Below are positions 16,763 through 49,360 of a stretch of 64,000 bases of DNA, in pieces. This DNA comes from Lepidodermella squamata. Its lineage: Eukaryota > Animalia > Gastrotricha. The position numbers and the translations under genes were made by a program. Every line of letters begins with the position of its first letter. The stretch's first letter is position 1. A model generated the notes under the pieces. The model was given only the letters and a program-made list of their open reading frames with translations, did no database searches and was not told the origin of the DNA. The stretch lies in contig JBLDXI010000029.1 of assembly GCA_047495785.1 (NCBI GenBank), positions 1,612,001-1,676,000 on the forward strand, written 5' to 3'.

Positions 16763-18716
16763 ATGTTCCTATTTATCACCCCTAAGGCGTCTCTACTAGC
16801 CGAGTCGACTCTTAATTTACTCGTGAATCAGAAGCAACAACAGCAAAATAGCGAAGAAATCCCGTCGATAGCCGCCGGCATAGCTTCGATGGCTCGTTTC
16901 ACGGACGCCGATATGTTTCCTAATTCTTACGACGGTGACGACGAGGAGGAGGACTGGATTGAAGACGAGTCGCCTAAAACTGCGAAAACAGAGTTGAAAG
17001 CGCCTGGTGATTTAGCGAGTCAAATGCTGGCATTGACGCCGGTTGGTCGGCGGCGAACTCTGCGAAAAAAGCCGCTGACAAGTGCGATAAGTACGACATT
17101 TTCGCTAGCTGATACTCTATCGCTGGATTCTAGCAATTTTTCATCAATGGCGCCGATAGTTGTCGGCGGCAAAAAATGGACATGCCGGTATGGTTCGTTT
17201 TATAAAAAATTTCTCGAGAAAAATAAACCAAGATCAGGATATTAATTTATCAATGGCGGCAAGAACATCGCTAAGCATCGAGTGCCCGGACAGTGCACAA
17301 TTTTGATATTAATATTGAGGCCCACACATCTTATACAGTGCATAAAGTTTTATTAACCTGGAGAAAAGTCTCGTGCTTAATTGCCACGTGCGCGACTCAG
17401 TTTCTTTTTTAATCGTTTATGGGATAAATCAGCTTTTCGATGATCAATGTATTTAGGTACTTGTTTTAGTTTATTTGCAATATCTGAATCGAATTTTTGT
17501 TTGAAAGGCCATTTTTGGGGTAAAAATAAAAAAAAATGCGGGTCTCAATAGCCGATTTTTTGGAATTACGAATTTGTTTGGATCCTCCCCATAACTGTTT
17601 ATTTCAACTTCCCAGTAAATTCAGGTGTGCATTTTTCAATATTTTCCTCCAATACTGATCGAAGACTCAATCGGAAAAATCGCTGATTTGTGAAACCGAT
17701 TCTAATTTTTGATATCGGCTCAGCTCACTCTAGTATATTGTGACCCTTGACCCCTAATAGAGCATTAATTTAACCTGAATTTGGACGAGCCTTAATTTTT
17801 CAATATTTGTTTGATTTGTTTGAATTATTTTGAATATTTGAATTAGTTCATATTAATCATATTTTTTAATTTCGAGTGAAAGTTTTGAAAAAATCATAAC
17901 TTTCGTATTTTCAGATTGTCGATTTCGTCGATGCTGCCAGGCGACGCGAGCCTGCTTGTCCTTCGCGAGACCTTTGAAATAATCAAGCGAAATGCCGATT
18001 CTGTCTCAATTCAAGCCATGCGAGCCCTGTTACAGCGCCTGCCATCGGCCGCCGAAAAATTCGCTAAAGCTGGCAAGATAAAATACATTGACGACGATTG
18101 TAAGTTTCTAGAAAAACACAACTTCAATTTTAGACACCCGATTTTTTCAATTTCAATTTTTCAAAATTGATTTGAAATTGAAAAATTAAAAAACTTGTAT
18201 TAGAAAATTTTGGAATTTAATTTTAAATTTAATTTTAAAATTTCTAACTTCAACTTCAAAATTTAATTTCTTATTTTATGTTTTCAAATTTTTTTATCAT
18301 TTTTAGGGGAGCTTATTAATCACGGGCGTGCGTTTCTCGGCGCTATTGAGAAGTGTATATCCCGAGCTAAAGACGTCAAAGCCCTGAAAAACTACCTATC
18401 AAACCTCGGCCAAATGCATAGCCGAGCCGGTGTTAGATCGACGGAAATACCCGTTGCGCTTCACTTCTTCGAGTCAGCCATACTCGCGTATCTACGACCC
18501 TTTCACCTTCACCAAGAACCGAGCGATAACCCGAGCGGTAAAGTACCTACTATCAGCACTTCCTCAGTTCCGAACGGGCCTAGGTACTCGGATGAAACGG
18601 GCGTTCCGAGCGAGAATCTGGAATATCAAAACCGGTCGTCTTGTTTCGTATGCACAACTTGGCGAAACTTTTTCGATCTCATCAACATTTTACTTGTCAC
18701 TGATATTAAGGAGTGA
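16763..18716 (+). CDS. Globin G1 (long acidic/Ser-rich N-extension; E7 His, F8 His; HxH...CxxC); start uncertain
   Basis: Spliced (introns ~17188-17914 and ~18099-18307): LLVLRETFEIIKRNADSVSIQAMRALLQRLPSAAEKF...WELINHGRAFLGAIEKCISRAKDVKALKNYLSNLGQMHSRAGV...FFESAILAYLRPFHLH...CFVCTTWRNFFDLI. The A-H helix pattern of a 3/3 globin is recognisable. Confidence 0.85.
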
Positions 18717-19336
18717 AAAAGTCTTTAAATAAATAAACCCGGTGCAGTAATTGTTTTGGGCGATGAATAATCGAATTGTATGCGCGTCATTGGGTTGAGA
18801 TTTCGATCCCGCTTATAGGTTTATTTTTTGTCTCGGAATTATTGATGCCTAGATTCTACTGATTGGATATAAGCCTTAATGAGCGGCCGCAATCGCCTTC
18901 CTTGCGTAAATTTTACGCTTTGATATCTGCAAAATATTAAATTATCACGATCTAAAATAGCGTTGCAATATGAAATTTGACCTGCATGAAAAGATCACGC
19001 GCATAAAGACGCGACAGTAAATCAATGCCGCCAGAAAGGACAAAAGCTTGTTTCTCGCATATGAAAATTATATAACGATGATGTATTTTTCCTGTTTTGA
19101 AAGCTCGATGCTATAATAAAAATCATCGATGCTATTTTTGACGCCCACAAATTGGACTTCGTAATTGTTGTCCCCCCCGGATTTTTGAACCCCTGGATTG
19201 AAACATTTCCCTTGAATTCCACGATCATTTTCTGTTTATTAGCCAACTGAAATAGGCATTTTCGGTTTTTCGGTTCTCGTTAGATTCTGGGAAATTGTAA
19301 TCATATTAGAATTTTAACATTTTGAAAGATTTATAG

Positions 19337-20733
19337 ATGAACGGAATGAGAGCCTCGCTGACCGTTTCCGATGTGCTGAATCGGCACCACATTGGCCGGG
19401 GGAATCATCAATTCTGCTTATCCGATGAGGACATTAAAATGCTCCGCGAATCATTCGAAAAAATCAAACCACATGCAAGTGAAATAGGAACTCGAGCTTT
19501 ACAACAGTTAGTCATTTGCATAATAATATTTTCGAATTTACTTGAATATTTAGGAGGAAATTTTTCCTAAAAATTTAGCCAGTCAAAATTTTTTTGAGGA
19601 ATTTTCCGAATTTTGACATTATTCCTTATATTTGCCTGTTCAGCTCATTGTTAATCATCAAAGTTCTCAATTTCCATGTTCTCTTAAGAATTTTAAATAT
19701 TTATCATTTTTCGACCGTTTGAATCTTTGATTTTTCCGATATTTCGAGACTCAAAAGATTTAGAACGCTGAATCGACCTAAAAACAAAAAAAACTAGATT
19801 GAAACGCTTTCTGAAGTTTCATGTCTCTCAATGAATCAAATGTTTTTTAATTTTTTCTCAATTATTTTAATTTTTTTTATTTTACTCCTTATTCCTATCC
19901 GATGACCGATATCGGCCGATATCGATTTCCCATCTCGATCAAAAATCAAAAATCAAGATAAATTTAAAAAAAATTAAAAAATTAAAATTAAAATTCTATT
20001 GCAATGGATCAAGAGAGACAACAGTTTAAAATCAACAAAAGTCGGTTGTCGCGATATTGCCTATTTACCTTGAAAAAAATCCAATTGAAATCTAATTTAT
20101 GCGAATTTGTAATTTTTTTAAATTTTCAGAATAATCGAGCGAAGTCCGGCGACCTTGGAAATATTTCAAAACGGCCCAAATCGTCGCATCAAAACCGCCG
20201 ATGCTTGGGAGCTGCAGGGCGTTGGCGTGACCATTCTATCAAGCATAGAACGCTGCGTCCTCCGGCTACAACAGCCAATCAAACTCGAAGAGTACATCCG
20301 GCAAATCGTCGATCTTCACGCGCGAGTGTTCAAAGTCAACGTCGACGAGCTAACATTCGGCCTCGACGTGTTTCAAAGCGTAATTCTCGAATTTCTCGAC
20401 GTTCAACATGGCCACCAAAAAGATGACAGCCTGCTGAGCTCGCCCAGCAGTGAATTAACCGTACCAAGTCCCGTACTGTACGACCGGCCGATAACGATGA
20501 GCTTAACGCCAACGCTGCAGCCTAAAAATAGCTCGAGGAGTAGGAGGCCGTCGCGCCGAGCTTCCGCTTTCGACGTGGAATTGGAGATGTTGCAGGTCAG
20601 TAGGAAGCGCAGCAGTGAAGCGTGTCGAATCTGTTCGCTGTGGAAGCACTTTTTCCAGGCCATTTCGAACCACATGCAGCAATGCGCAATGGCTATAAAG
20701 GACGATAATAACACGGCTGTTAACTCTCATTAA
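19337..20733 (+). CDS. Globin G2 (E7 Val, F8 His; HGH...CRIC with ~69-aa GH insert)
   Basis: LSDEDIKMLRESFEKIKPHASEIGTRALQ | phase-2 intron ~19507-20129 | IIERSPATLEIF...WELQGVGVTILSSIERCV...YIRQIVDLHARVFKV...CRICSLWKHFF. Confidence 0.85.
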
Positions 20734-20742
20734 GCACCAAGT

Positions 20743-21249: not shown

Positions 21250-22163
21250 ATGGGTGCTGGATGCTCTTTGCCGGCGCTAGTTGTGCGGCAGGTGACGTGG
21301 CGCCGCCACCCTGACCCATTTTTCAGCGTTAATGAAATATGGCTTTTACGCAGCAGTTATATTTTGATTAAACGAGATAGCGGCAATCAACGGTTTGGAT
21401 TCGATCGCGAAAAATTATTCAAACTATTTATTCGTAATTTTACAGAATTATCGATGAAATTCCCGGAGCTATGGCTGTTATCCTCGGCAAAACTTATCAG
21501 CCTGGCTCGAAAGAGGTTTGGGAAATTGAGTTAATGGCTCAAGGTAAATTTTGCAATACCTCAATTTTCGTTCATTTTAACTGTTAAAATTTTTCCAAAT
21601 TTTAAAAATTTTTGTTCGACTGAAAACTTTGCGCTAAATTTCGAAATTTTAATTTTAATTTTTTTAAATTTTCCTATATTTATACAGTAATTATTTTTTG
21701 CTTTTGATCGATTTTTACTGCTCCAAAATATCTGAATTTCATTTTTATCATGAATTTTTTTAATTATTTCAAAAATACAGGATTGATATTTCTGAGCGGA
21801 ATCGAAAGAGCCTTGCTCTTAGTCGACGAGCCCTATTTACTGACGGCATTCGTCCATCAATTGGTTCGCAATCACTCTAAACGATTCAAAATTCCTATCG
21901 ACATGCTAAAAATTGCCTTGGAGACTTTCCGAACAGCTGTCATGGTCTACCTGCAAACAAAACACCACATCCACTATGCGGATAGTGCAAATTTCGTCGA
22001 GAAATTAACCGAAAAATTAGAATCGCAAGAAATTGATTACTTCAGTGAAAAAACGTGCAAAATATGCGCGGCTTGGAGGCATTTTCTAGACACCCTGATC
22101 GGCCTAATTGTTACTAGGCTATTAACCAAATGCAAGCTGCCCTATTGTTGCGATGATTCATAA
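21250..22163 (+). CDS. Globin G3 (MGAGCS N-terminus; E7 Gln, F8 His; HxH...CKIC; apparently shortened B helix)
   Basis: MGAGCS...FSVNEIWLLRSSYILIKRDSGNQR | IIDEIPGAMAVI...ELMAQG | LIFLSGIERAL...FVHQLVRNHSKRFKI...KHHIH...CKICAAWRHFL; introns ~21392-21445 and ~21544-21780. Confidence 0.8.
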
Positions 22164-23242: not shown

Positions 23243-24701
23243 ATGGGTAATTCTGCCAGAAAACCTGTTGAAGAAAACGGCTCCGCTGGCGGTGGAGATG
23301 TGAAGCAGAAAATGGCCTTATCGCTTCAACTCAGCGAAGCAAGTGCGAAGTCAATAGCTGCTGCCTCAACCTTTGAATGGTCTCAAGAGGAACTCAATAC
23401 GTTAGCCGATAGTTTCGCCTATGTTAAACAGAACTGCCACAAGGTTGCGCTCAAGGCCGTTATCAGGTAAAATTCGCGTTTTTCTAGTTTTTTCTTTGGA
23501 TTTTTTGGGTTAATTTTTTATATAGGATGGTTGATACAATGCCTGACACGGCTGGTGCGTTGGAAATCGGCACCAAAAATACTGGCGAGTCATTTGGGCT
23601 GATGAATCAAGGCCTCATTTTCCTTACAGGTAAGGTATTCTAGAAACAAGAAAGCTCCTGCAGCGTATTACCCATTTACAGTCAATGAACAGCGTTTTTT
23701 TTGACCAAAATTGCTGGAATTTTTAGGAGAGCGCTCTATTTCTTTAAAAATGAACGCATGAATTTTTTTAAAAATTTCTGATCTTAATTTATAAATATTA
23801 TTACAGATTTTAATTTTTTTCAATTCTGCTCTATACATTTTAAGAATTAAATTAATAAAAAATTCAAACATGTGAAATTTCAATTTTTTTTAAATTTTCA
23901 TGCTGTCCGCTAAGGTTGAAATTCCCCAATTTTGTTCCCCAAATTAACTGAAATCTAAGCGGAAGATTAGGAATAAATTTGCTATATTGCTGAAATCAAT
24001 GTATTCAATTGTTACTATGGTAGGATTGGAAAGCATAAAATCACACAACTTCAGTTTTCTTTATTCTTTTCGAATCAAAATTTGAATTTTACAATTTAGC
24101 AAGCATTTCATATTTAGCCTATCTAAAGCATTGCGCAATTGTCCTGAGCTAATATGTCGCGACGCAAAAAAAATATTTTTTCTAATTTTACGAATTGTTT
24201 TTATCTGGAATTGTTTATCACTCGGAAAAATTAGGCAGTTCAATTTTTTCAAAAATATTTTTGTTTTTCGTTCAAGGTATAGAAAAGTGCATCGAGCGGG
24301 CTAATGATCCTGCCAAACTGCGAGCTTATGCCAAGCATCTAAACTCGATACACAGTAAACAGCACCAGCTGAAGCTGCATCACATGGTCGGCGGGCTGAA
24401 GGCGTTCGAGGACGTCATTCTCGAGTGCATCCAAACCGGATACCAGCACAAACCGCCCCGCCGGCAAAGTTCGGCCATGACCATTCATTTGATGCAGCAA
24501 CACCCGTCTCAACGGCCGCGGCGGGTGAGCATAGTTGGCGAGCAACAGCCTTTGCAGTTACTCGGGGCCGAGCACGTGGCTATTTGTGCGATTTGCAAAG
24601 TTTGGATCAAGTTCTTCCACTTGTTATACGTGACTTTTGACCCTAAAAACGGATTGGTTAACAAGGAATTGATGGCTAATGCTGATTCAGCTCGATATTA
24701 A
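23243..24701 (+). CDS. Globin G4 (MGNS N-terminus; E7 Gln, F8 His; CAIC)
   Basis: WSQEELNTLADSFAYVKQNCHKVALKAVIR | MVDTMPDTAGAL...LMNQGLIFLTG | IEKCIERANDPAKLRAYAKHLNSIHSKQH...EHVAICAICKVWIKFF. Confidence 0.85.
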
Positions 24702-25220: not shown

Positions 25221-26148
25221 CTTAATATTTGGGATTTGGAACTGATTGGAATAATTTGGTAATGATTTCACTAAATTCCAAATTAAATATTATATGAAAC
25301 TACAGAAAAATATATAAAATAAAGCGAAATTAAGGTTTAATAATCTTAATTAACATACTTATATTAAATCTGAGATCCGCGAAATTTGAGATTTTTAGTA
25401 GATTTTTGGGAAATTTTGAAGCTTCCCCATAGACCATAGACAAATCGGGAAATTTCCAGTTTTCTGCCGGGAAGGTCTGCGGATTCTACACTCGTGAATA
25501 AATCATTTCACTTCTGTCGGCTATAGGATATAGGATATAGGCTATAGGATAGGCGATAGGACATTCACTATCATGAATCATTGGTCGAGTCAGCTCAAAA
25601 AAAATCGAATTTCTCCATATTTATTTTGGTGAATTTTCAGCAGCAATAAACCATTCGAGGAATTTCAGCACTTCAGGTTCTAAGCATTTTTTCATATTTT
25701 TTTATACAAAAGTTGGATATACCCCTCCCTCTGCGCGACGAAGGAAAGTAATTTATACTAATTATAATGAAGTTAGGACCATTATACGAGACAAGTTATC
25801 TGCAAGTGTCTGAGGTTCAACGGAAATATGATGCTTGGCATGTGTACTCATTACCGGAAGTCTCATTCACAACAAACAAACACACTACTTTTCCGTCTAA
25901 TTCAAGGTTCCAAACCTCGAGCCCTGGTTCAAGACACGGATCGACATTTACGTTGCTCATTATTCTAAATTAATGTTGCGAACTTGCGTTGCCGCCTCGA
26001 AGCCGGGGGCGGGTGGGAAATCATGCGAGAGATCACGTTTTGAAAGGTGATCGCTCGAGTCAAAACACTGAGCATGAGCGAGAACCAAACACTTATCATA
26101 AGTTCGAGCTGTTTTACAAACATCTTATAGTTTCCTTCAGTCATTGGA

Positions 26149-26780
26149 ATGGGGTCGAATTGTTCGCAGATAACAACAAAGCTTACTGTTATCTCTGGTC
26201 CGTCAGTCATTACGCAAGAGGAGTCTCAGTTGATTCAGGAGAACTTCGAAGCCATGAATAAGCATAGCCACGAAATCGCTCTGATGTGTTACGAAAGGTA
26301 AATAACTTTTCACCATTCAAACAAATGTATCTAACTCAAGCATTCAGGATTCTAGCTGAGATACCGGAAACGGCTAACGTTTTGAAAATGGCTGGTAAAG
26401 CAGCATCTACCGAGAATGAGCTGATGAATCAAGGCCTGATTATGTTGAAAGGTTATTCATTCCAATATAGATTCGACCCCTTATCAACTTTTTTCATTTT
26501 AGGAATTGAAAAATTTGTTAAGCTCTCGAGCGATCGTTATCTTATGTTCGAAGCAGCTGGCCGGCTAACGGCGTCGCATTCCGAACGGTTCGGGTTAACT
26601 GCCCACCGAATGTCACGGGCCATTCAAGCGATTCAGGAAGTCTTCATTCAGGAGGCAATGATGCATTGCAGCCATGATGAAGAAATGACGCGAACGGCTT
26701 GGAAACGCTTTTTCCGCGAACTCAACTACATATTCAGCTCGATGGCTCGCCGAAAGCCGAGCACAGTTGCAGGGCCGTAG
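26149..26780 (+). CDS. Globin G5 (MGSNCS; E7 Gln, F8 His)
   Basis: MGSNCSQ...ITQEESQLIQENFEAMNKHSHEIALMCYER | ILAEIPETANVL...ELMNQGLIMLKG | IEKFV...AGRLTASHSERFGL...TAWKRFFRELNYIF. Confidence 0.85.
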
Positions 26781-26901
26781 TAGCGAAATCAAAATCCAGT
26801 TATTAATCCTTCAATTTCGGGATAATCCTAAAACATGTTTGATCAAGTAGCTTTTGAATAAATCATCCTTTTTGAATCAGAAGAGTTGTAGCAGTTGGGA
26901 A

Positions 26902-27557
26902 ATGGGAGGATCTTGCTCACAGAATCTTGATGTCTCGGTGACGGAGCAAGATGTGCTTCAAGATCGAGCTGAAACTTCGATCAGCAAGGATGAAGCTAAT
27001 TTGCTGGCTAACAACTTTCGGGCGTTGTCAAAAAACTCTGAAGAGATAGGACTAGCCTGCGAAGAAGTGTTCGTTCCACTTGAAATTTCTGTCTTTAATT
27101 CTCCATCCTGTTATATAAAGGCTTATTGAAAGCATGGACGATGCTGCAGCTGTTTTAGGGGCTTCAAAAGGACCAGGGGGTTCAAAATCGGCCTTAATGG
27201 GACAGGGAGTGATTCTTCTCAAAGGAATAGGTCTCCTAGTAACTCTAGCGACCGATATGACGAAACTGAAAGCGACAATTGAACGACTATCCATCAAACA
27301 TTTGGACACTTATGGACTAACTCCAGTAAAGATGGCACAGGCCCTTCAGTGTAACCTTTTCTATTACAAGTTTTAACATTTCCTGTACTAGTTTTACAGG
27401 TTTTGAGGATATCTTCATCGAGCAAGCAATCAGCTATTGCCAATCAGACCGGGAGTTGACTCACTTTGCTTGGCGCAAGCTTTTCTGGGAAGCGAAAGTC
27501 CTGTTTGTCATTCAGTCAAAACGGATGAACATTGATCGCCAAAGTGATGCATTATGA
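26902..27557 (+). CDS. Globin G6 (MGGSCS; E7 Gln, F8 His)
   Basis: ISKDEANLLANNFRALSKNSEEIGLACEEV | LIESMDDAAAVL...LMGQGVILLKGIG...IERLSIKHLDTYGL...ALQ | CFEDIFIEQA...FAWRKLFWEAK...stop 27555-27557. Confidence 0.85.
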
Positions 27558-27818
27558 CCGTTTTCCTTGTCTTAATGTCACACCCCCCATATTATACCTT
27601 AGTTTCCGGGAATTAGGCTGCTAAATTTGTTACACAGCACCTTAGATCAATAAATCTATTTGTGTTTGACGTCATTTCAAGCAATTAGTGTAATTCTTCA
27701 ATAGGTGCGATGTTCCTTTCAGCCTACAGTAGTCCATAAAGCGTTTTTCCTTGCGCAGAATGTTTACTGTAAGTGCGATTAGGAGATGAAGCCTTTCCCT
27801 ACTTTCCAAACCCACGCA

Positions 27819-28510
27819 ATGGGAAGTGTCTGCACTAAAACGGTCACCAACAGTATTCCCCGCTACGACGAACACATGGCAGCCGAGCTGAGTCACGACG
27901 AAGCAGCTTTGCTATCCGAAAGCTATCGCTTAGCCTCGAGGCATTCCATGGACATTGGTTTTCTTTGTGAACAGAAGTATATTAGAAAGCATTTATGCAA
28001 CGTTTTGTCATCTTTCATCTTTCAGACTAGTGAAGTCAATGCCAGCTGCCGCTGAGATTCTGCAAGTTAACGGCGAATCGTCGCGAACACATCGTTTTTC
28101 CCTAATGGGCCAAGGCGTAATTCTCGTGAAGGGCATCGGCTACTTCGTAAACTCTGCTCGGAACCAGGAGAAAATGATCGACCACGTGGATAGAATTGCA
28201 ACGAGACACGCTGAAAGGTTCAGTTTGTCGCCGGAACAGATGGTCGAGGCGTTAGACTGTATCGAGGACACTTTCATTGAGCAGGTCATCAAACTGATAG
28301 ATGAAGAGTTCGCGGACAGTAAGTTCTCGTTTATCAAGGTTGAAATTGTTCTCAAGAATATTATTTTTTCAAGGTACTGCCATTGCGTGGAGGAAACTGT
28401 TTAGGGATGTTAAGAATCTCTTTACCGAGCAGTCGAAAACGCTGCTGATTGTGAGACCGCAAACATCTCGCAGTATGGTCAGCAACAGCAACGGAAGCTG
28501 GAAGGAATAG
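27819..28510 (+). CDS. Globin G7 (MGSVCT; E7 Gln, F8 His)
   Basis: LSHDEAALLSESYRLASRHSMDIGFLCEQK | LVKSMPAAAEIL...LMGQGVILVKGIGYFV...VDRIATRHAERFSL...CIEDTFIEQV | ...TAIAWRKLFRDVK. Confidence 0.85.
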
Positions 28511-29115
28511 CATTTTATTATCAATTTTACCTCAATAAAACAAAATGCGAAAATATCAGTCGCTTTGTGCTCAGCTAAAGCACTTCTTTCACTCCTTTGA
28601 TTGAAACGGAGAAAATAGGATTTTGGCTCCGAAAAAGGCACCGAAAGAAGAATCCGGTTATGGCCAGCAGCCAAAATGTGATCAAGGGGCTTATGCTGCA
28701 CTGCTGATCCTTTAAGATGAAAATAAGCCGAGTAACCTGAAATAAACTTGGCGGATGTCCAAGTCAGTCAAATATGAATTGCGCCATCCGTGCTATAGGA
28801 GTGTATACCGGCATCAGTCGATCAGTGATACATTGAGCATTCGAGAAGCATTTGAAAAGCGACAAATCGTGAATCGCAATCAAATAATTATCAGGGTTTA
28901 AATTGCGTTTAAGCTTTTTAATATGTTTGCACGTATCCTCTTTTGATTTAGACTCTGCAGAACAAGTATCAGCCGGAACCTCGATGGATAATTAATATTT
29001 CTATCAGGATTACAACGGTGCCTAGTATGCTCAAACATCGCATCTGGAACGTATCGCTTTTCAGTTCAAGAGCTGAAACAATTTATTCCTTCATTCCTAT
29101 CTGTGTATTTAAAAT

Positions 29116-36424: not shown

Positions 36425-37062
36425 AAGTTATAAAGTACTTCATTATCTCCCTAATCATGAGGAATTTTTCGAGGCGGGTTTCACCATCCGATAGACCTAG
36501 TGTTCGGTAAACTTTGCTGAAATTCTCGTTAGCATCAGATCCCAGCAGGAAAACTGGCGTAAAATGCTCCATACGATTCATTCCTTTTTTGAAATTGCTA
36601 TTTTCTATTCGATATTCCATGAGCTATTTATCGCTCTTGCCAGAGGATTTAAGTGTCTTTTCGATAGCCTGTCTGAGCCGCCGATTTCTAAACAAAATTC
36701 ATCCGCTCAGCTGAAATTGGCAGCTTCACCAATTTGTGACAGATTTCCCAAATAAATTCAAAAATCGCGTTTGGTGGATTATTGGTTTTTTCTGTCACTT
36801 CAATATTGGCTATTGACCTGATTCCTTGTCAAGAAAATAACCCGATGAAGTCTTTCCACAAGGATGGTGCCACCCAACCTCAGAACTTAAAAAATGCTAT
36901 TTTTCCAAAATTTTAAGTTTTCACAAACATAGCATGCAGCAGTTTCACCAACAGTTGTTCTGCTCCTATCCGATTCTTACAAGGTTTACCGCACACTAGA
37001 TCTATCGGATGGTGAAACCCGCCTCAGAAAATTCCTCATGGTTAAGGAGATTATGAAATATC
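36425..37062. mobile_element. Degenerate fold-back element with ~100-bp inverted arms
   Basis: atctccctaatcatgaggaatttttcgaggcgggtttcaccatccgatagacctagtg (36445-) is the imperfect reverse complement of cactagatctatcggatggtgaaacccgcctcagaaaattcctcatggttaaggagat (~36994-37051). Confidence 0.7.
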
Positions 37063-38171
37063 GCTCGGCAAAAGAAATATTGTCCGAGCTTTATATAAAA
37101 AAGAAGAAACATCTCGATAGTCCATATTTCAATATAATAGTATATTGTATGGCACAGGCGGGTTTCAAGGGGACAACAACCGTCATAGACAAATATCGGT
37201 ATTGCGGCATAATAACTGCTTTTGATTGACCGTACATTTTATTGTATTATATTGTGCGCGCTAACATTTATGCTATTATGCGCGCGAATGCCCCAATATG
37301 CGCGTTCGGTGTTATGTGTTATATAAAACAATAGCGTAAACCAGCAAACAGCAACGCTTATTATTAGCTTAATTGCCAGAAATACCATTTATTTCTTTTT
37401 TTTTCTTTTTGTTGGAGCGGATCAAGCGGAAAAAATGTCAAATCAGTGAAACGTTAAAACTACAGTATTAATTTTGTTATCATAGTCACCGCTAAAGAAA
37501 AGGGGAAAAATACGGCTAAAAGCGGCTAATGTAGACAACCCGTCGATATTGACAATCTAGCCAATTAAAGTAGTAAGCTTTCAATAAAATCTCGAGAAAT
37601 CGATTGAGATACAGCCTGAAAACCGAAAATTACAATGAGATACTACAGTGCTCCCTCGGTAACTGCAAGGGGTCGGGGTCACGACCCATGAAATTATCGA
37701 GGGAAACAGGGATGATCCCCGATGATCACGAAACATCTAGATTTTCAAGAAGCTGGGCTTCTTAAATCAATCATTTCAAATCTAAATCAGTGAAAAGAGG
37801 GTCTAAATCGAATCAAATCAAAAGCACTGATCTTTGGTTCACTTCGTTGTATAGCTTTCTAATTCGAGCTTGCGTTTTGTTCATACCGCGATCTGGCGAT
37901 ATTGGCCCATTTATCGAGGTAATTAAAGGGCAGGATGCCCTCTTTCAGCCAATCTGGAATAGGGAACCTTGAGACCGCTTTTTCAAAGTCGAACTGCTGT
38001 TGAACTGAAATGCGCAAACTCCTCTGTCTTTCGAGGCGTTTTTGGTGGCCGGCTGGCCATATTCAGCTCAGTAGCATTACGTGCAGCCGGTCGAGGCGTG
38101 TGGTCGGCGATTTGGTATAATAGAGCGAGAGAAGGCACGCAGCTGAAATATCTTGTTGAGTAATCGATAGA

Positions 38172-39620
38172 CCCGCACAGAAAAAACTGGGTGGAAAGAC
38201 GGCATTTTTACATGGCAAAATGTTACATGGTAACTCAGTTCATCTGGCTCCAGGGAACGAGCTGTAAATCTATTACATGGAACAATTGCGCGTTTACATG
38301 GAACATTACTAATACTGGTTCCACCCTCATTCCACCCTAGTTACACCTACTACCACCTACTACCACGGCCCTGTTCTAGTTTCTGTTTCCACCCGATTTC
38401 ATGAAACACGAGAAGTCCGTTTGAAGTTTTGTTTATTAAGCACAGGCCTGATAAACACAAGTCGAAGACAGCTATAATCTGCAAGTCAGGATAACAATTT
38501 AGACTTGAGCGCCAACATAAGCAACAGTAACACACCAGCACGCGCACAATGGTGAATTCAAGAGCGCAAAAAGACGTTCAGAATTTTAGAAGAATATCCA
38601 GGGAAATGTTTACAAGATAGACTGACAATACGATAGAGAGAATAAGAAAGTCGAAAGAAAATGCCATTTAACAGATTGACGAACAGGTTCATAACATTCA
38701 GTGTTTTCGTCGGCTTCGTCCCCTTTTTTCTGGCTCTCCAGTCGCACCTCGGACTTTTCCTCGGAAGCTCGCATCATCAGCTGCTTCTTGATTCTTGATC
38801 TCCCGAATTTCCGCAGTTGATACTTCAGGCTCGTCTGTTTCCGTAATTTTCGCATAGGTAGCTCTGTCACCTTTCGATACCATATGAAAGATCGGTCGGT
38901 CATCTGAAACGAGCCGGAAACTTTTCTGTATTCACAAAAATTCTCCGGGAAAAGTCACTAACCTTGGCTGCCGTAATAACACCTCGAAATTTAGGACAAA
39001 TCTTCGCATGAGGAATTGAACTGCTTGGTCGTACAAAAATTAAACAGGAATTCTAAAAAGAAAATTTATTAAAAATTGCGTTAGGAACAAAAAAAATAAT
39101 CATTAGAGACAAGTTAGAACAGACTAGTTATGACAAAGTCATAGAGAATAGCGCCACGTGCAACTTATTTTGCCAAGTTCAAATTTTTGAATTAAACGGA
39201 CCTCGGCGTGGTGTCACTTGCAAACGGCACGTTGAGGCCAGGCTTCAACAGTAGAACGCATGCGAATATTGGTTGGAATGCGGAATGTAAAGACGCCATT
39301 TTTCCATATTATTCCAAATTGTTCCATGTAAGCAAAACTTCGTGTATTCGCATGAAAAAATTGCGTAGTTACATGTCATATTTTGTGTGTAATCTCGACT
39401 AAATTCCATCTGCCTTTGATTTCACCAAATTACATGTAAACACCCCACATTGCATCGGCGATTTTTCACGCATCTCCATGTAAACCTGTGTAAGCGCGCA
39501 ATTATTCCATGTAACAACAACATCCATCTTGTTACACCCGCAGATACATGTAAAAATCGCTCCTTTACATGTCAAAATGTCGTCTCTACACTTTATTACA
39601 CCCAGTTTTTTCTGTGCGGG
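38172..39620. mobile_element. Nested non-autonomous TIR element (CACTA/CMC-like: 2-bp flanks, subterminal repeats)
   Basis: GA|CCCGCACAGAAAAAACTGGGTG ... CACCCAGTTTTTTCTGTGCGGG|GA; many TTACATG/CATGTAA subterminal motifs at both ends. Confidence 0.8.
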
Positions 39621-42080
39621 GATCTATCCACCTTAATTTACTGGGGTAATTTTTCCTTGTAAAATGATCGAACTGATCGATGGCTATCTTCCTAGTTTCT
39701 GGCGGTTTGTACCTCCTGATGTGAGATGGTTACAAGTTCTCTATTTTGGGTTTGCCGCTTTCAAATTATTAAAACGGAGAGATTTCATAAACCCTGGACC
39801 TGTTTTCTATCTGGAACATGCAATAAAAATTGCGCTTCAAACCTTTTTCACCTTTCCCTTGTGACTTCATCTTGAGCAAAACTTTATTTGAAATTTGTGG
39901 AACCATGGGTTGTAACGTGGTATACGATTTCTAGCTTTCAAGATATCTGAAAGACTGGTACCAAGACATGGGAAAATCGAGAAGGCTGGGTTGCAATTTT
40001 AGCTTTTAGGTAGTCTCATAAAATGTTCTGCATCATCCACCGTATAAATTGGAAATAAGTTTCAAGTTTGAATTTTCTCGTCAAAATGTTGATTAAGAAA
40101 AAATGAAAATGATACAATGTTCTCTCGACTCTCGACGCTTGAATTCGTGTTTAGTTTTTCAGCGATTTTACAGGAGACTATTGGCGATATTTTACTAAAA
40201 GTTGCGTGTGCTGTGTGCTCGCGGTAATATGAATCAGGAATTCATTACTACAAAATTTAGAACTCATTTTTCGCGCGCACGTTTATCTTCTAAAATGAAG
40301 AAGAAATGCGGTAAAAAAAGTTTAACTGTGTGAGTGCGCGCGCCTAAAAACAGCCCGTGTGCTCTCAAATCTGCGCGCTGCAAGTCGAAAGGTGTATTAA
40401 ATGCGCGAGGTTGTGCGCGCGCTGCAAAAAAGCCCACACAAACACACACGCGCGCGCACTAACAAAAAGATTTATTCCCGCAATTTATTCCCCACTTCAT
40501 CCGTGGTCATGCTCAAGCATGCAACCTAGCCCAACCTTTCACGCTGAATCCGAATATCTTATCATTTTGTGAAATTAGTCTTGATTTTCTTTCATAATGA
40601 AAAAGGTTAGAATTTCTCCCAATTTCAAATATTCTATGGCCTTGTTGTAAGCTTGCTGTTGGACTCAGGAGAGCAATTTGTAGCAGTCAGTTGTTATAAA
40701 ACATGAATGTTCACCTCGCAGCTTGTTACTGGCAACTATATTGTGAATTGATTGAGACGCTAATACAGTGCTCCGCAAACCTTTTTCACCTCTGGCATTT
40801 TTGGCGGCCGAAAAGCCTTGCTTCGGCCGCAGTAACGAACAGGCCCTTCTCCGGTCGCACCGACATTGGCAATGTCCTTTCATCGGCCGCAAATTTTGTT
40901 TTTGCAAGCAACTTTTTTCCATGACCAATTTTCTTTCGCTTAGTTCTATGCGCTTAGTGAAGGCGGTAATTTACAGAGGCCTCAAGAGCGAACTTCAACC
41001 GCCTAAACCGACGTTTTGCCACAACTTGAGTCATCAGAAGCGAGCAAAAGAGGTTGCTTTTATTCGCGAGCAAAGCGAGCTTGAGCTAACGGTATTTCAC
41101 AGGAATATTTGCTGAGAATAGTCTAAAATAGACTGATTCGTCATGATCGAAGGAAACGGGTTAGCCAGCCGCATTCCAGCCATCATTCGAGAAAAGCTTC
41201 CCGGCCGCGATGAACTGCCCTGCCGACCTTCGAAAAAGGCTTCGAAAAAGGGGGTTGTAAACGGGACGTGCTACAATTGCGAGCATGCGACTTTATCGTT
41301 TCAAAGCAAGTTTTCAAGTGTTAAAATTGAGTAAAAATAAAAATAAATTTTTAATTTTTGAACTAAAGCCAACAGCTTTTCATCAAAATCGAGAACTTCA
41401 TCGTTCGATTGCGAGTTGAAATTTAGGTATTGAAATTTTAAAATGTTAGTTTTCTTCAAATCATGAATGATAGGAAATCGACAGTTACTTCGGCAATTTT
41501 CGTTGCTGAACTTCTCTCACTCGGCTATGTTTCGCCATTTTCTATCAAACATGCCCATCAAATGCCTCAGAAATGGAATTTCAAAAATTACGCGCAATTA
41601 TTTTTAAATCCGATTTTCAAAAATTGAATTAAAAATTAGGTCCGGGTAGCTATTGCGAGTACGAGGCCTTACTTTATTTTTTCAAAGGCCTTAAAAGGGG
41701 GGTTTGTAAACGGGCGGAAATAACGGTTATTTGAAGCTATTAGGTACGGAATATACGGTAATTGTGGTAAGCGCTTCTACACTCGCATCTCGCATCGCAA
41801 GCAAGGATGCTCAATAGAATTTAAAAGAATTCGTAGTAATTCAATGGTTTTGTCGAAATTAAAAATGATGGGGAAACGCGATGAAAACCGCAACGCCGCC
41901 TTATAGTATGGATACATACAGCAGCAATCAGCGTAAATCGCGTGGTTTTCTCCTATCATATCAGACGTAAGGTACGTATAACGTATAATAAAGCGCTGTG
42001 CTGCGCACACACGAGTTCTATCATAGGTAATTGCGTTTACCGTGAAATTCGAGTATTAGCCAATTTGGCGCGTTTGTCAT

Positions 42081-42395
42081 TAAATATCTTTTTAAATACG
42101 AGGGTGATGTAGTTATTTTTTCAGAATTCTGAATGGTTACGGTCTGTTTCAACTGGTTGATAAAAAATTGCTGCGTTTCACTGGCTGGTTTTTTCTTGAA
42201 AGGAGATTTTGTAGGAAAATATAGACTTTTGGCCAGATTTACGGGGTTTTCAATTAATATCTTTTTAATTTCGAGGATTATATAACTATTTTCTTCAGAA
42301 TTTTGAATGGTTGGGGCCTAGTTCAACTGGTTTACAAAGAATTTCTAGATTTTACAGGCTGGCATTTTCTTAAAACGAGAGTTTATAGGAAAATG
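42081..42395 (+). repeat. Diverged tandem duplication, ~174-bp period
   Basis: Both units contain aatatcttttta...cgagg...ttcagaatt(c/t)tgaatggtt...ttcaactggtt...ggctgg...taggaaaat. Confidence 0.7.
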
Positions 42396-44155
42396 TTGAT
42401 TGTACGCGATGTTCGAATTCGTCTTTCAGCTGCCAGTTTATTAATATTTCGTCTTTGAATAAAAATTCACTGTATGGAAAAGGTGACATGCACTGAAGAG
42501 AACAATCGACGAGAAAATGACATAGTTTTAACCTATGGTTCATGTTCCTCGGCGAATTAAGACAGTAAAGCGAGATTTTCAGTGTTCAAGTTGGAATCGG
42601 TGTAGCTAAGGGATTTCGTGGATGACTACTACATTTTTCCACTGAATATCAGTGCCAAGGACCTGTCAAATGGAACTAACGGTTGATCATTAACAATTGC
42701 TGGCTATATTATTCCGAATGAATAGAAATTGCTGTCGAATGTGAAAAAATGTATCCTGTTTTATAGAATTATGTGGCGATTGTAAATAATCTAGCCACAA
42801 GAATTTCTTTATCACCCAACATAATCAACCGTTTGGCCCTCGACTTCGATTCTAAGCGGAAAAATTTCATCATCATCCACGAAATTAAAATATTACACCG
42901 ATTCATTGCTTATCACTGTCAAACTTGAATTTCAATTAATTTTTTAGGAGGAGAATTGGTCATCGATTGGAACAATATCATATTAACGTAAATTGGTCCC
43001 TGCAGTGCCTCTCATTCTTCAAACAAGAGTGAATTTTCATCTTATGATGAAATACCAATTTATCGGCTGCTTAACGACGGACAAGAGCATCAAGCCAAGT
43101 CAGGTTTTCCCTCAAAAAACTGGTTTTCTGAAAAAACCAGCCGGCAGAAAATGAGCGAATCTCAGGCCGACTTTTAATGAAGGGCTAAGGCATAAGATTG
43201 TCTGACAACATATTAGCATCATCCACGAAAATCTAAAAAAATTTCAATGAAACCAAACCAAATTCGTTAGGGCTCGAAGTAAAAAAGTGGTACGGTAGTA
43301 CTCTTATGTGTGCGTAGTATATTCATAAACAGAACGCGCGCTTTGGCGCAGCGCATAATAGCATAAATGTTAGCGCGCGCTATAATACAATGAAATGTAT
43401 GGTCAATCGAAAGCAGTTATTATGCCGCAATGCCGATATATCAACGACATGGACTAACTTCAATTTCTTCAATCCGGAACTAATCCGGAAAATGCAGTTA
43501 ACATTGCAAGATTTCTATGTCAGCTATTCTCCAATATTCGGAAGTGAGAAAAAGTGACATGGGGCATAAATGAAGTAAGATTTTTCCGAAAACTGAGTGG
43601 CCACATAAGTGTCTGTAGTGCCCAACATGAAGTTTACGTCGTCTAATGCGGAAATTTATCGTTAGTCGCGTATGTTTTTTTCCGGGCTAAGATTTTGCAC
43701 GTCTGCCTAGATCCAGATTTGACGTTAAAAGTGTCTGTATGTTCGAATTTTGAAGGGCAAAAACCAATTTGATAGAGAAATTTATGGCGTAAGGAGTTAG
43801 TACATGTTCATTTTTCAAAGTTATGCAGAACTGATTATTAGGCCAAGGAACATCGTTCATTTGTTAACAAGGAAAATGAAAATTCTACTTTAGCTACACG
43901 TTCACATCGTACTGATTGATGTTCCGATTAAGCTCAAAAATTGCTGTTGATAATTACGTCATTCTTCCTCGTTCCGAACACTCATGCAGAAGATACTTGT
44001 AGGCGTTGACCTTAGTCTTGCTCATATCTTTTGCTTACCTACTAAATTAGCCCTAATTGGGCAGCAGAGGATGTTTCAGTGTCTAGATTTCCAACTCGCA
44101 TTCAAGTCTTATTAGTTTGTATTCTATCCTGAAAGACTATCTCATTTTCGACAGA

Positions 44156-45041
44156 ATGGGCTTGGTTGGCTCGGTTTTCCGTGATCGAGAGCGTAGCAGT
44201 GACATTCAAAAGCGGAGAATTCTCGCCGATCGCCAAGTCAGAAGCGCATTTGTCGCCCTGGAATACGCGAATCGCTTTCAAATCAACAGCGGCTACAAGG
44301 AAAAGCCACATCTTTTCATTTCCTCCCGACTGACCCCGACTCCAGAGGAAATCGACGTAATTCGACGAAGTTTCGAACGGATTAAGGGGCAGTCTGAGAA
44401 GATCTCATTGAATGTCATTCGAGGGTATGGAAAATCGATTTTACAACTTTTTAAATGTTTAGCTTTTGTTTACAGGCTTGTAATGCGTATGCCTCAAGCG
44501 AGTGCGATTTTTAGCACCCACGACCCCGCCGGCATTAAACGAGGTGAAACCTTGCGATTTGTCACTCGAGGCTACGTCATGCTCCACGGGCTGGAGCACT
44601 GCATACGGAATCTGGAGAATTTGGACCAGCTGCAGGTGAAAATAGCAGCGTTCGCGGAAACTCATGTCAGGTACAAAGTTCCAATCGAGTCGGTGCCTAT
44701 CGTTGCAGACAACTTTGAAACTGAAATTTTAATCGCATGTCGGGGACTGCACGATAAAACCTGCGCGCTGACATCCGCCAGCAATGCAAGAGCTAAGACT
44801 TGCGATGGAAACGGACACTCGGCATGGAAAATAAACAAGGCCGGCTTGAATCACAGCTCCACGTGCACTGAACAATTTGACGACCATTCAGTTTGCGTTT
44901 TGTGGTAAGCCTTGATTTGCTCATTTCAATTGCATTTACATCATGATTCATTACAGCACGGCATGGAGGAAATTCTTCGATCTCGTTAATATCGTCATGA
45001 TTTCGGAAATGCTCTGTCAGGTTAATGATCAGTCGCATTGA
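44156..45041 (+). CDS. Globin G13 (MGLVGS; E7 Arg, F8 His; H..C...H..CVLC); close paralogue of G12
   Basis: PTPEEIDVIRRSFERIKGQSEKISLNVIRG | LVMRMPQASAIF...FVTRGYVMLHGLEHCI...IAAFAETHVRYKV...GLHDKTC...DHSVCVLC | TAWRKFFDLVNIVMISEM. The last intron splits the second Cys codon. Confidence 0.85.
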
Positions 45042-45192: not shown

Positions 45193-46579
45193 TTAGGTCG
45201 CGGTTATACGCTTTATCCAATCTAAGACCGAGCAAACGCGTACGAAACTGATGATTTGATACTCGAAGATTTTTGTAAATTCACGCGACCAGACACCTTC
45301 TAAAGTGAAAGCGTTGTCTTTATAGCAGGTAAGCGGACTTCCGCCGATCTCAGCAGAACCAGGTATCCAGTTGAAACCAGTCACCCGGGCGCAAACCATG
45401 TTCGGATGAATTTTGCCGGGCAGTGACGCGTTGTAGTGCTCCTGGCATTCGTCAGGCTGTATAAGATTCACGGCAGCTTTTCGCGTCTTAATCGACCCGG
45501 TCATGAAGCCTGTATTAGTGAACCCGGTGTTGGTTATGATGGATTGATCGCTTGTCATGCATGGGTCTTCGCACGATGCTGGCAGGCATATCGGCTGAAT
45601 ATTCCATGAATCGAAAGTTATAGGACGTGGGACAGTCGCATTCCCTATAATCGAAAAATCATTAATCTCCTTTAAGATTAAAAATTATAAATCTCTTGGC
45701 AATGAGTCAATTTAATGATGAAATCGATTTTCTCGAGGATATCGAAAAATAAGGCGCTTACTTGATATTTTAACTAGACAGAAGTCGTAGCCCATCCTAG
45801 TTGCATGCGACAGTGGATGGATTACAATTTCGGAAGAAGTCGACATGAAGGAGACTTTGACACCAAATTTGTCGTTCATAAAACCACTCGTCCATCCTCC
45901 AACGATAGTCAGCGCCTTCGGAGCCAATGCGACGCAACAATTCGCAGAAGTCAAGACCCAATCAGCATTCACAAGTGCCCCACCACATGCTGTTGATTGG
46001 TTGAAAAAATGCCGTCCGGATAGCCAGACCTGCGCCATGAGAGTAACCTATGTAATTTGCCTTAAGGCAGCTGTTTGTGATCGAGCATGCACGTTATTCC
46101 TTACCTGCCACGGGAATTCGTGATTTTCTGTCGCAACGTAGCCTGCATCTGTCAGAACACCGAAATTTCCTATTACATCAGTGCTGTTGCTTCGGATATC
46201 ATTTCGACTCCATAAAATACTACGGCCACATTTTCCTTGTACACTAGGAGGGACTGGTATCCTATCTGTGATGAAATATAATGTTAAGGATTAAAAATAT
46301 TTTTAGAATTTAACCATGAAATGCAATCGCAGAGTTGCCTGGAGGTGGAAGGGTGATGTTGTCGATCGCTTCAGCTTGTTCCCTCGACTTGCTTGTAGCT
46401 CTCCTTGTAGAACTAGGAGCTAAATAGTCGCCGTAAGTTATCGAAGGGTTGAGAGTATGGAGTAAACTTGGCATCGAAGGCTCGGGCGTAACCCGAACAT
46501 TGGCAAAGCACGCCGATGTCAACGATTTGCGGCTGACGATGTGGAAAAGCGATATAAGAACGAAAGCAAAGTTGGCCAT
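45193..46579 (-). CDS. Secreted trypsin-family (S1) serine protease homologue, predicted catalytically inactive
   Basis: Signal peptide MANFAFVLISLFHIVS; HEFPWQ; CGGALVNADWVLTSANCC (His->Asn); YDFCLVKI; NIQPICLP; MVCA; PGSAEIGGSPLTC (GDSGGP lost); FVRVCSVLDWI. Confidence 0.85.
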
Positions 46580-47675: not shown

Positions 47676-48408
47676 TGCGTATTTCATGACTTTTCCAAAG
47701 AATAATTAGGGCGCGTCCCAGGACTCACTGTGAAGAATTTAACGATGTTAATTAGTGAGGGACTCTATCGCCTATTTTGATTCTTAGTTTGGGCCAACGG
47801 GATGAAATATCACACGAATATATGATTTTTAGTATTCCTGTACAAATTCAGTCCAAATGTACCTCCCCGCACCTTTACCACGCCTTTTATCAATCATTCG
47901 TCGTTTGATTATCCAAAGCATCAACATATATAAATTATGCATAGCTCTTTCATAAATGCCACTTTTCACTTGTCGTCGTCAAGTTTTGATTTAATTAGGC
48001 GAGCGAAGACGTATAAGACGAAAATCTGACAAAAGCGCAAGTATATAACCGATTACGCTCAGTAAAGTCCCGAACGAGACAAAAAAGACATGAGTGGCTC
48101 ATTCTTAAAGAAGCACGCAAATGCTGAACGAGCGCGTTTCGTGTGCGTGTAGTAGAACTATAATAAATTGCGCGAATTAGATAATGCAAAATACACGCGC
48201 GATCAACTAATCTTCTAGCGGACGGAATAATCTCTCTTATCGCGCTGTGCCTCGTTGATCGATTTTGAATCCACAATTCAGCCGTCTGTAATACTTTTGT
48301 AGGCTTAATGCTCGGATTACTCGATTGCGAATTTTACAAACAAAATACGATCTTAGCTTATTTCTCAATGGCTGTAACTTCAGTGCATCAAGTCGATTAA
48401 AGGAGAAA

Positions 48409-49360
48409 ATGGGTCAAAGTGCGTTGACAGGTGACCGTAGACGCTTGAATGATGGTCAAGAAGGCCCGAAGAGTGATGAACCTAAACGGCGGTTAACCGA
48501 CGCCACCGCAGAACTAACTATTCGAAAAACACGAACATTTGACAGGATTTCTACTCTGAACGATCAATCAGCCAAAGATGCACATCTGTGCACGTTCACG
48601 ATCCAGCCGCCATGTACAGTTCTTCACTCAGCTGGTCATTCAGACGCATCGCTAGCTGACGATGGCTATGATGAAGACGAGGAAAGCCTAGCCCCAGAGT
48701 CTGAATGGCTCATAAGCGCCGAAGATAGATCAGTCATTCAGAAGACGTTCGACAACGTGAAAATAGCGAGAGAATACATCGGCTGGAAAGGAATGCAAGG
48801 GTAGAAATTTGTTTGTTCTTATACTCTCTGATCATTTAATTTCTAGGATTTTCGAAACATTTCCCGACGTAGCGCACAGTTTTCGAACATCTCCCCATAC
48901 GCCGATCAAGAAAGGGTAAAAGTGAATTATTTTTAAAATAATTAATAATTCGTCCTTCTTTTTCTCCACAGTGACAACTGGGAGCTAATGGTAAATTGTC
49001 TGACCTATTTTCGGGATTTTTCATTGTCTTTATCTACAGGGTCAGGGTATGACGTTCCTCTCAGGCATCGAGCGTTTCCTGAAACGTATAGGAAGACCAC
49101 GTGGGTTCAGAAGTTATGCCGCCGCGTTGGCGCAATCCCATCGGAAGTACTCTGTGTCTCCACACTACATGTTGACAGCGCTGGAAATATTCCAAAGCGT
49201 CATAGTCACGCATCTTACCAGCCGCGAATCGCAAATTGAGGGCGAAAAAATTCGTGCGTCATGGACACATTTTTTCGATGTGCTACGTAATGAACTCGCC
49301 TCGGCCTCAAACGCAGTAGCGACTAACGAGCAGCTTTGTCCTTACTACTCGAGTGAATGA
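48409..49360 (+). CDS. Globin G14 (MGQS; E7 Gln, F8 His; includes a 20-nt micro-exon)
   Basis: ISAEDRSVIQKTFDNVKIAREYIGWKGMQG | IFETFPDVAHSF...IKK | GDNWELM (48971-48990) | GQGMTFLSGIERFL...YAAALAQSHRKYSV...RASWTHFFDVL. Confidence 0.85.

Follow-up and report, generated by a model that had tools for sequence, protein, structure and literature searches.

An old, order-conserved tandem array of divergent 3/3 globin genes in the gastrotrich Lepidodermella squamata

Acylated, membrane-bound globins are widespread across the bilaterian non-blood globin clades (PMC7771090, PMC7457136), and the acylated membrane-bound GLB-12 acts in signalling in C. elegans (PMC5022669). This nematode has 33 GLB genes, very divergent and dispersed over six chromosomes (PMC2576238, PMC5022669), and the globins known from redox signalling are of the bis-His type (PMC5022669). 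No paper on gastrotrich globin genes was found in the literature.

According to our analysis of a 64,000-nucleotide stretch of the L. squamata genome (the window), 14 globin genes, all on the plus strand, stand at positions 16763-49360 (about 33 kb), from the ATG of G1 at 16763 to the end of the G14 stop codon at 49360. A sequence-only reading had proposed a cluster of 14 same-strand spliced globin genes there; our coordinates agree, and a family HMM run over the six frames of the window finds the same 14 loci, a 15th being absent. Every model keeps an open frame after GT-AG splicing (27 introns, median 53 nt), and pairwise identity ranges from 13 to 46%, with a median of 23%. Local alignment, the HMM scan and tree building worked on the spliced models, the Pfam search was done exon by exon, and helix numbering was derived from the alignment and one orthologue model.

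Protein searches returned relatives only in metagenome contigs of apparently one other species (species B), in which eight array counterparts follow in the same order. On a tree of the array and species-B proteins, built without an outgroup, the supported orthologous pairs and groups are G10/B10, G11/B11, G14/B14, G5-8 with B7, and G12-13 with B12-13. The array is old and conserved, since the tree interleaves the orthologous pairs and their gene order is collinear; the lineage-specific radiation supposed earlier fits the narrow range of relatives, but the radiation itself is an old one. A metagenome match (L010) to the G10 orthologue was rejected as chance, its contig having 50% GC and no globin. 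G13 exon 2, used as query in a word-indexed search, gave no match, and sequence searches gave none to nematode proteins; language-model neighbours, to be taken as leads only, were mostly nematode globin clusters (0.89-0.92 in feature space).

Gene models along the array

G1 (16763-18716, 339 aa; exons 16763-17187, 17915-18099 and 18307-18716, with start and exon 1 uncertain) combines HisE7 and HisF8 with a GH insert bearing His and CxxC, and matches Pfam Globin at 2e-4. G2 (19337-20733, 257 aa; exons 19337-19506 and 20130-20733) has ValE7, CxxC and the longest GH insert of the array (81-residue span). G3 (21250-22163, 207 aa; exons 21250-21392, 21446-21543 and 21781-22163) starts with Met-Gly and Cys5 and has GlnE7 and CxxC; its helix B is six residues short with the sole usable B12.2 donor, and the model or the gene is possibly degenerate. 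G4 (23243-24701, 250 aa; exons 23243-23466, 23526-23629 and 24277-24701), whose species-B counterpart is B4, has a Met-Gly start, GlnE7 and CxxC.

The next four genes all begin with Met-Gly and Cys5, followed by Ser6 or, in G7, Thr6. G5 (26149-26780, 176 aa; exons 26149-26297, 26348-26451 and 26503-26780) pairs TyrB10 with GlnE7, while G6 (26902-27557, 184 aa; exons 26902-27068, 27121-27350 and 27400-27557) and G7 (27819-28510, 195 aa; exons 27819-27976, 28026-28318 and 28374-28510; Pfam Globin 7e-4) pair GluB10 with GlnE7; intron 2 was observed spliced in G5 and G6. G8 (29116-29912, 231 aa; exons 29116-29285, 29338-29441 and 29491-29912) has LeuE7, and its intron 2 is backed by a loose contig end. 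In G9 (30008-30710, 199 aa; exons 30008-30228, 30283-30350 and 30400-30710) E7 is His, the His...CxxC span is the shortest, and introns 1 and 2 were both observed spliced.

G10 (30930-32435, 467 aa; exons 30930-31408, 31458-32047 and 32101-32435) carries GlnE7 in a complete domain; its orthologue B10 is intronless and 47% identical in the core. Its N-terminus probably holds, judging from profile and intron position, a relic globin half-domain (31317-31530, plus strand) with helices A-B and an E-like motif and without F8. There a phase-2 intron (31409-31457) lies at the B12.2-equivalent codon, on which the best A-B profile match also ends, and the A-B profile score was equalled by 2 of 500 shuffles in G10 and by none of 500 in B10. 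The HMM found no further globin domains in the N-terminal extensions, and position-specific scoring shows a relic in G10 only.

G11 (33648-34785, 311 aa; exons 33648-33659, which is inferred, 33802-34274 and 34335-34785) has GluF8 and CysE7 in both species and is, from these residues, probably a haem-less or non-His-ligated globin. G12 (35151-36120, 303 aa; exons 35151-35503 and 35562-36120) and G13 (44156-45041, 260 aa; exons 44156-44424, 44476-44904 and 44957-45041) are 46% identical and share a Met-Gly start, Ser6 and ArgE7, with a His/Cys...CxxC motif in G12 and CxxC in G13. G14 (48409-49360, 266 aa; exons 48409-48800, 48847-48915, 48972-48990 and 49040-49360) has a Met-Gly start, the pocket MetB10/PheCD1/GlnE7/PheE11/HisF8 and a Pfam Globin match at 7e-7; its third exon is a 19-nt micro-exon, and the splicing is supported by the intronless orthologue B14. 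The starts of G1, G2, G9, G10 and G11 are predicted from the sequence.

Two features break up the array: a gap of 8 kb that houses a TIR element, and a trypsin-like gene on the minus strand. The element, about 6.2 kb (37193-43439) with terminal inverted repeats, and a 625-bp foldback (36436-37060) occupy most of the gap between G12 and G13. The trypsin-like gene, at 45196-46300 with its 5' end placed approximately, is found in each of the two species between the counterparts of G13 and G14, and it apparently lacks the motifs of the catalytic His and Ser.

One sequencing run, probably of RNA, extends over G5-G10 and bears out five of the splice junctions. A trans-splicing or operon signature was not convincing: acceptor-like sites stand 5' of the ATG in 5 of 14 genes, against a background of 19%.

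Fold, introns, pockets and N-termini

Per-exon matches to Pfam Globin (PF00042), a check suggested earlier, were obtained for 10 of the 14 genes (E 7e-7 to 0.09), the gathering score being attained by G14 and G1 only. The array had been called hidden, with genes that automated annotation may miss, and this holds in part: most exons and some full-length orthologues do score under the Pfam cut-off. Matches to AvrPto, Katanin and DUF families, weak and under the cut-off, were rejected as helical noise. Searched with phmmer, the G14 orthologue had zero PDB matches, but the family profile succeeded, with 273 sequences matched (best 5.5e-9) and the 60 matches listed all globins. The AF2 model of the full-length G14 orthologue (pLDDT 91.8) has invertebrate haemoglobins as its best structural matches, at the top 3pt7_B, a Lucina haemoglobin (Z 18.4, with 148 residues aligned at an rmsd of 2.2 A), and the 3/3 globin fold is thereby borne out. 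G12 exon 2, folded alone with helix A absent, has cytoglobin as top match at only Z 8.2, and RsbR-type non-haem globin domains rank near it in this weak model (Z about 8). A shape search of the Atlas gave one flavohaemoglobin row and was otherwise uninformative.

The proposed motif skeleton holds as loose consensuses and fails as strict patterns, which fit only some genes: an aromatic residue at A12 and Pro at C2 occur in 12 of 14 each, Gly at E8 and Trp at H8 in all 14, and the proximal HisF8 in 13, G11 (Glu) being the exception. The ancestral B12.2 intron, also predicted, is there as a phase-2 intron at C2-6 (equivalent to B12.2) in 12 of 14 genes and in five species-B genes, and is missing from the G1 and G10 domains. 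A G7.0 intron was found in none of the 14; the sole G-helix intron is G11.1, in G6.

Six different residues occupy E7 across the array. Arg, Cys and Gln at this position are kept across species, as is GluB10, and CD1 is Phe, by alignment, in only 6 of 14. GlnE7 pockets are found in true O2 and sulfide carriers too. His at both E7 and F8 is possible only in G1 and G9, the only genes with HisE7; since the known redox-signalling globins are bis-His, the other 12 cannot be of that type, and the earlier proposal of redox globins has to be given up for them in its classical bis-His form. The GH region spans 18-81 residues, with a His/Cys...CxxC motif around the insert in eight genes; in the literature we found no description of a zinc-linked GH-loop insertion in globins, nor of ArgE7, GluB10/GlnE7 or CysE7/GluF8 pockets in animal globins.

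Read by eye, nine of the 14 genes start with Met-Gly and five do not; among the nine, Ser or Thr stands at position 6 in seven and Cys at position 5 in five. The Met-Gly codon is the first in-frame ATG in seven of the nine, and the start is retained in six species-B counterparts. We consider this N-terminus, with Cys5 where present, a candidate membrane anchor. No secretion signal is evident by eye in the array proteins, and no transmitter domain is attached to them.

Possible functions

Somewhat in preference to its negation, we hold that this is an old, order-kept tandem array of single-domain 3/3 globins, mostly membrane-held non-respiratory haem sensors or redox modules. Tandem duplication would have made the array, which two species or more would have kept in order and under selection. 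Its members are most likely cell-type-specific haem sensors or redox-signalling modules, most of which would be held at the membrane by N-myristoylation and, in G3 and G5-G8, also by palmitoylation. Their pockets, each tuned differently (E7 being Gln, Arg, Leu or Val, and B10 hydrophobic, Glu or Tyr) and probably five-coordinate for the most part, may bind or react with O2, NO, CO or sulfide. Ligand or redox state could be relayed by way of the long extensions at the N-terminus and of the GH insert, the base of which may be clasped, perhaps through a metal, by His/Cys in eight members, with G11 as a probably haem-less partner. The non-respiratory role claimed earlier is plausible from the acylation motifs, the very diverse pockets and the F8-less member, which speak to it indirectly. 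We may even suggest, tentatively, an undescribed and possibly phylum-specific globin subfamily forming a combinatorial kit for membrane gas and redox sensing, in which a clasp at the GH corner, formed by zinc or a disulfide, would link the haem to a second redox input.

The acylation and pocket evidence would also fit enzymes that protect the membrane or detoxify (NO dioxygenase, nitrite reductase, peroxidase or sulfide oxidase activity), divided among tissues or substrates. Globin X has been proposed as a protector of membrane lipids (PMC7457136, PMC7475203), and ArgE7 and GluB10 could be catalytic; yet the array has no reductase gene, and neither the extensions, which are long and disordered, nor the GH inserts nor the conserved F8-less member would be explained, and we regard such enzymes as rather unlikely. 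An oxygen store, or facilitated diffusion in hypoxic sediment, recalls the often clustered respiratory globin genes (Platynereis, chironomids; PMC7771090, PMC7457136) and suits the near-universal HisF8, the near-canonical G14 pocket and the haemoglobin-like model; but respiratory clusters hold similar paralogues, unlike the low identity here, and lipid-anchor motifs, long GH spans, the E7 residues Arg, Cys, Leu and Val, and the lack of an evident secretion signal are a poor fit, which makes it improbable.

It would be still harder to place many members outside haem chemistry, with the globin fold serving as scaffold or for ligand binding, as in RsbR-type non-haem globins. GluF8 in G11 of both species, the scarcity of CD1 Phe and the G12 exon model point that way, but that model is weak and lacks helix A, E8 Gly is invariant, and HisF8 is kept in 13 of 14 array and 8 of 9 species-B proteins; we think this very unlikely. 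Chance motifs, decaying pseudogenes or a chimeric assembly after whole-genome amplification might be suspected from the low Pfam scores, the short helix B of G3 and the MDA amplification of the probable source genome (PMC11660948). Against this, an independent DNA run covers every bin of 26141-32140, contigs are found spliced and the orthologues are collinear; DNA-level repeats between paralogues amount to one 46-nt match, which excludes recent duplication or an amplification chimera. In a divergent individual the listed frameshifting indels are all non-coding, and indels within coding DNA are multiples of three. Artefact or decay is essentially refuted, G3 perhaps excepted.

Comparison with known globin systems

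Divergent-globin radiations are already known, and the ancient collinear array is a variant of them. It shares with the Caenorhabditis GLB radiation a tiny animal with many very divergent globins bearing N- and C-terminal extensions, a divergence that predates species splits, variable central introns and some acylated members (PMC2576238, PMC5022669). Unlike the dispersed GLB genes, nearly all without B12.2 and G7.0, 14 genes here share a stretch of 33 kb, B12.2 being kept by 12 of them, and in contrast to the bis-His GLB-6, GLB-12 as well as GLB-26 only two have HisE7. With GbX and GbXL the array proteins have in common Gly2 with a nearby Cys, an N-terminal extension and a presumed non-respiratory role; the arthropod genes, however, are slow-evolving and mostly single-copy, and GbXL keeps G7.0 besides B12.2 (PMC7457136), whereas here 14 copies have diverged fast and G7.0 is absent, and in vertebrates GbX has Cys3 and is hexacoordinate (PMC7475203), as against Cys at 5 and mostly no HisE7 here. 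Tandem clusters are shared with Platynereis extracellular globins and chironomid HbL, which are secreted or abundant O2 carriers, unlike the array proteins, which carry lipid-anchor motifs and inserts and are extremely divergent. Like the arthropod androglobin domain and the RsbR N-terminal domain, G11 has no proximal His, but it is a stand-alone paralogue within a HisF8 array, with GluF8 and CysE7 conserved.

This would be a second independent, very large repertoire of divergent globins in a microscopic animal needing no oxygen carrier. The variants that occur in it naturally (ArgE7, GluB10, a paralogue conserved without HisF8, the His/Cys clasp present or absent) allow tests of the roles of non-respiratory membrane globins, and because the ordered array is preserved, unlike in the nematode case, the order of duplications, intron gain and loss and the diversification of pockets can be read directly.

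An intact tandem array of old globin genes

According to sequence reading and splicing by coordinates, fourteen genes (G1-G14, numbered in order) lie on the plus strand from 16763 to 49360, each model having one terminal stop and exclusively GT-AG introns, which measure 46-60 nt in 21 cases out of 27. Scanning the six reading frames of the entire window with an HMM built from the family recovered the same 14 loci and no further globin; together with the open GT-AG models this bears out the claim of the sequence-only reading that 14 same-strand spliced globin genes reside here. Core identity of the paralogues is low (median 22.8%, range 12.7-46.4%) and there are almost no DNA-level repeats among them, which indicates old duplicates; on the same grounds assembly echoes were rejected as their source.

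Intergenic gaps range from 95 to 1447 nt, with two exceptions. The G12-G13 gap (8035 nt) is mostly filled by a ~6.2-kb element (37193-43439) that has no long ORF and whose terminal inverted repeats, ~90 nt in length, are 90% complementary, and by an adjoining 625-bp foldback (36436-37060); no clear target-site duplication was seen. The G13-G14 gap (3367 nt) contains a trypsin-like gene (45196-46300, minus strand) in which the usual His and Ser catalytic motifs are missing. Its counterpart in the related species B, known from metagenome contigs, is also on the minus strand (L002:1599-2794), and the two are 84% identical, a conservation far above that of the flanking globins. Elsewhere in the window we noted, by eye, a nearly intronless gene resembling class C (GABA-B-like) GPCRs (3-2163, plus) and an Ig/FN3-like single-pass membrane protein with an acidic tail (3010-5148, plus). 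Several ankyrin-repeat ORFs and a Sushi plus ankyrin gene follow (6576-15490, minus), including a duplicated block (6579-8311 and 12581-15490). Beyond the array are two SLC6-like transporter genes in tandem and a short duplicated fragment (52842-57322 and 61036-61355, plus), and a reverse-transcriptase-like fragment (59307-60078, minus).

G1-G14 are globins. Searched exon by exon, ten of them match Pfam Globin (E-values: G14 7e-7, G1 2e-4, G7 7e-4, G12 9e-4, G9 3e-3, G13 4e-3, G10 5e-3, weaker still in G2, G3 and G6), the gathering score being reached by G14 and G1 only, and G4, G5, G8 and G11 give no match in this search. A profile built from these exons together with related sequences has 273 matches among PDB sequences, of which the best 60 are all globins. 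Structure prediction confirmed the proposed fold: the AlphaFold model of an intronless G14 orthologue (50% core identity with G14; pLDDT 91.8) has the globin helix order, and in structural comparison Lucina haemoglobin ranks first (Z 18.4, rmsd 2.2 A over 148 residues), ahead of other globins. The model of G12 exon 2, which lacks helix A, is weaker, and the likeness to cytoglobin, its top match (Z 8.2), is suggestive only.

Introns, expression and conservation in a related species

The ancestral globin intron pair is B12.2/G7.0 (PMC7457136, PMC2576238). The expected B12.2 intron, of phase 2 and six codons upstream of the C2 proline position, is present in 12 genes and missing from the G1 and G10 domains, so that this part of the earlier claim holds for most of the array; G7.0 was found in none of the 14. 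Second introns differ in position, being at E2.1 (G1), E8.1 (G3, G10), E14.1 (G4, G5, G8), in the D-region (G9, G14), at E6.0 (G14), at G11.1 (G6) and near the start of helix H (G7, G13), where the helix numbering comes from PDB alignments of the family profile and may in places be one position out. The G3 model, or the gene itself, is doubtful, since the sole donor available to it gives a helix B that lacks six residues. The four-exon G14 model, including a 19-nt micro-exon, agrees with the intronless orthologue. Three species-B genes are intronless (L006:7069-8295, L006:4969-5517, L002:4160-4957). Intron loss is frequent in this family.

The N-terminal extension of G10 (31317-31530, plus; species B, L006:7390-7560) carries a weak A-B-helix match ending exactly on a phase-2 intron with B12.2 spacing; after it comes a motif resembling helix E. 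Gene B10, the species-B counterpart, conserves the A-B portion, and the HMM did not detect the half-domain. The segment probably represents what is left of a fifteenth copy that became fused to G10.

Two sequencing runs contain the stretch, and the comparison with reads covered 26141-32140. Run X2, presumed to be RNA (its type is guessed) and present as contigs only, covers the gene bodies of G5-G10, its depth falling to zero in several bins that are mainly intergenic. Its contigs lack intron 2 of G5, intron 2 of G6 and the two introns of G9, with the breaks at the GT-AG ends of the models, and a loose end fits the joining of G8 exons 2 and 3; to this extent the proposed junctions are supported. 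Run X1 represents a divergent individual. Of the indels listed for it, the nine whose length is no multiple of three all fall in non-coding DNA, and three lie in coding sequence, measuring 3, 3 and 9 nt. Among the substitutions listed, at least 20 fall in 1076 coding nt versus at least 20 in 331 non-coding nt, with at least nine synonymous and at least nine non-synonymous codon changes, figures that are indicative.

With G12 exon 2 as query, phmmer found two proteins among 1.84 billion representatives, and later protein searches added only proteins from the same metagenome assembly set. The contigs have 38-40% GC (42% in the window) and the same short introns, and look like one related species. 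Contig L006 carries, in the order of the array, a G4-like gene, two inverted genes of G5-8 type (L006:4969-6510, minus), then G10-, G11- and G12-like genes; L002 carries a G13-like gene, the trypsin-like gene and a G14-like gene. Each of the two blocks sits on its own contig among different neighbours, and for G1-G3 and G9 no counterpart was found in the species-B contigs. One of the inverted genes starts with ATG in its L001 copy and has ACG at the same site in L006. A lone G14-like globin of species B (L008:10001-10873) has a Met-Gly start and Leu for Trp at H8. In a tree built without an outgroup, its bootstrap not fully converged, the pairs G10/B10, G11/B11 and G14/B14 and the groups G5-8/B7 and G12-13/B12-13 are strongly supported, and G4 and B4 share one group without resolution. 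It follows from these groupings that at least six lineages, with an orthologue identity of 36-50%, are older than the species split. In all, the array is genuine and intact, it is conserved, and at least part of it is expressed.

Possible function and known globin systems

Nine of the 14 proteins start with Met-Gly, at the first in-frame ATG in seven of the nine, with Ser or Thr at position 6 in seven and additionally Cys5 in G3 and G5-G8; six species-B counterparts keep Met-Gly. Read by eye, these starts conform to the pattern of myristoylation and palmitoylation that is usual in membrane globins (PMC7771090, PMC7457136) and make a candidate anchor. The proximal F8 residue is His in 13 of 14; G11 and B11 have GluF8 with CysE7 (window 34438 and 34534; L006:9340-9763). 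Position E7 holds Gln in seven genes; two genes have His, two have Arg, which B12 and B13 share, and Val, Leu and Cys occur once each. Residue B10 is mostly hydrophobic, but G5 has Tyr there, and G6, G7 and the two species-B B7 genes have Glu. In eight genes CxxC lies three residues ahead of the H8 Trp, and a His/Cys closes helix G, 18-81 residues intervening; both halves of this clasp are present in G10 and lost in gene B10, and the CxxC is kept in B11 and absent from G11.

Several features point to specialised, local haem chemistry: the anchor motifs, distal residues of six different kinds that are conserved between species, the long additions, which are disordered, and the F8-less member. 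We somewhat favour the suggestion that the array globins, tethered to the membrane via lipid anchors, would sense gas or redox state there. Bis-His coordination is found in the redox-signalling globins GLB-6, -12 and -26 (PMC5022669); here it is possible in G1 and G9 only, because of which the other 12 would have to act as five-coordinate ligand binders. Enzymes protecting the membrane, to which the same candidate anchors could be assigned, seem an unlikely alternative. Oxygen storage is quite improbable, and a microscopic animal would presumably gain little from 14 unrelated oxygen carriers. The idea of haem-free scaffolds, beside which the GluF8 of G11 and the HisF8 of the other 13 have to be set, appears more improbable still.

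Our literature search for gastrotrich globins found no paper. In its candidate anchor motif the array resembles globin X and X-like proteins; unlike them, it has G7.0 in none of its genes and a distal HisE7 in two, and it is not assigned to that group here. By analogy, the array would work most like the globin radiation of C. elegans, where 33 divergent globins, old and bearing extensions, lie dispersed on six chromosomes, most of these genes having lost B12.2 (PMC2576238). Both comprise many old divergent globins with extensions, but here the genes stand in tandem and 12 of 14 retain B12.2. The radiation as such has a precedent; the novelty lies in an ancient array kept collinear and in its unusual pockets.
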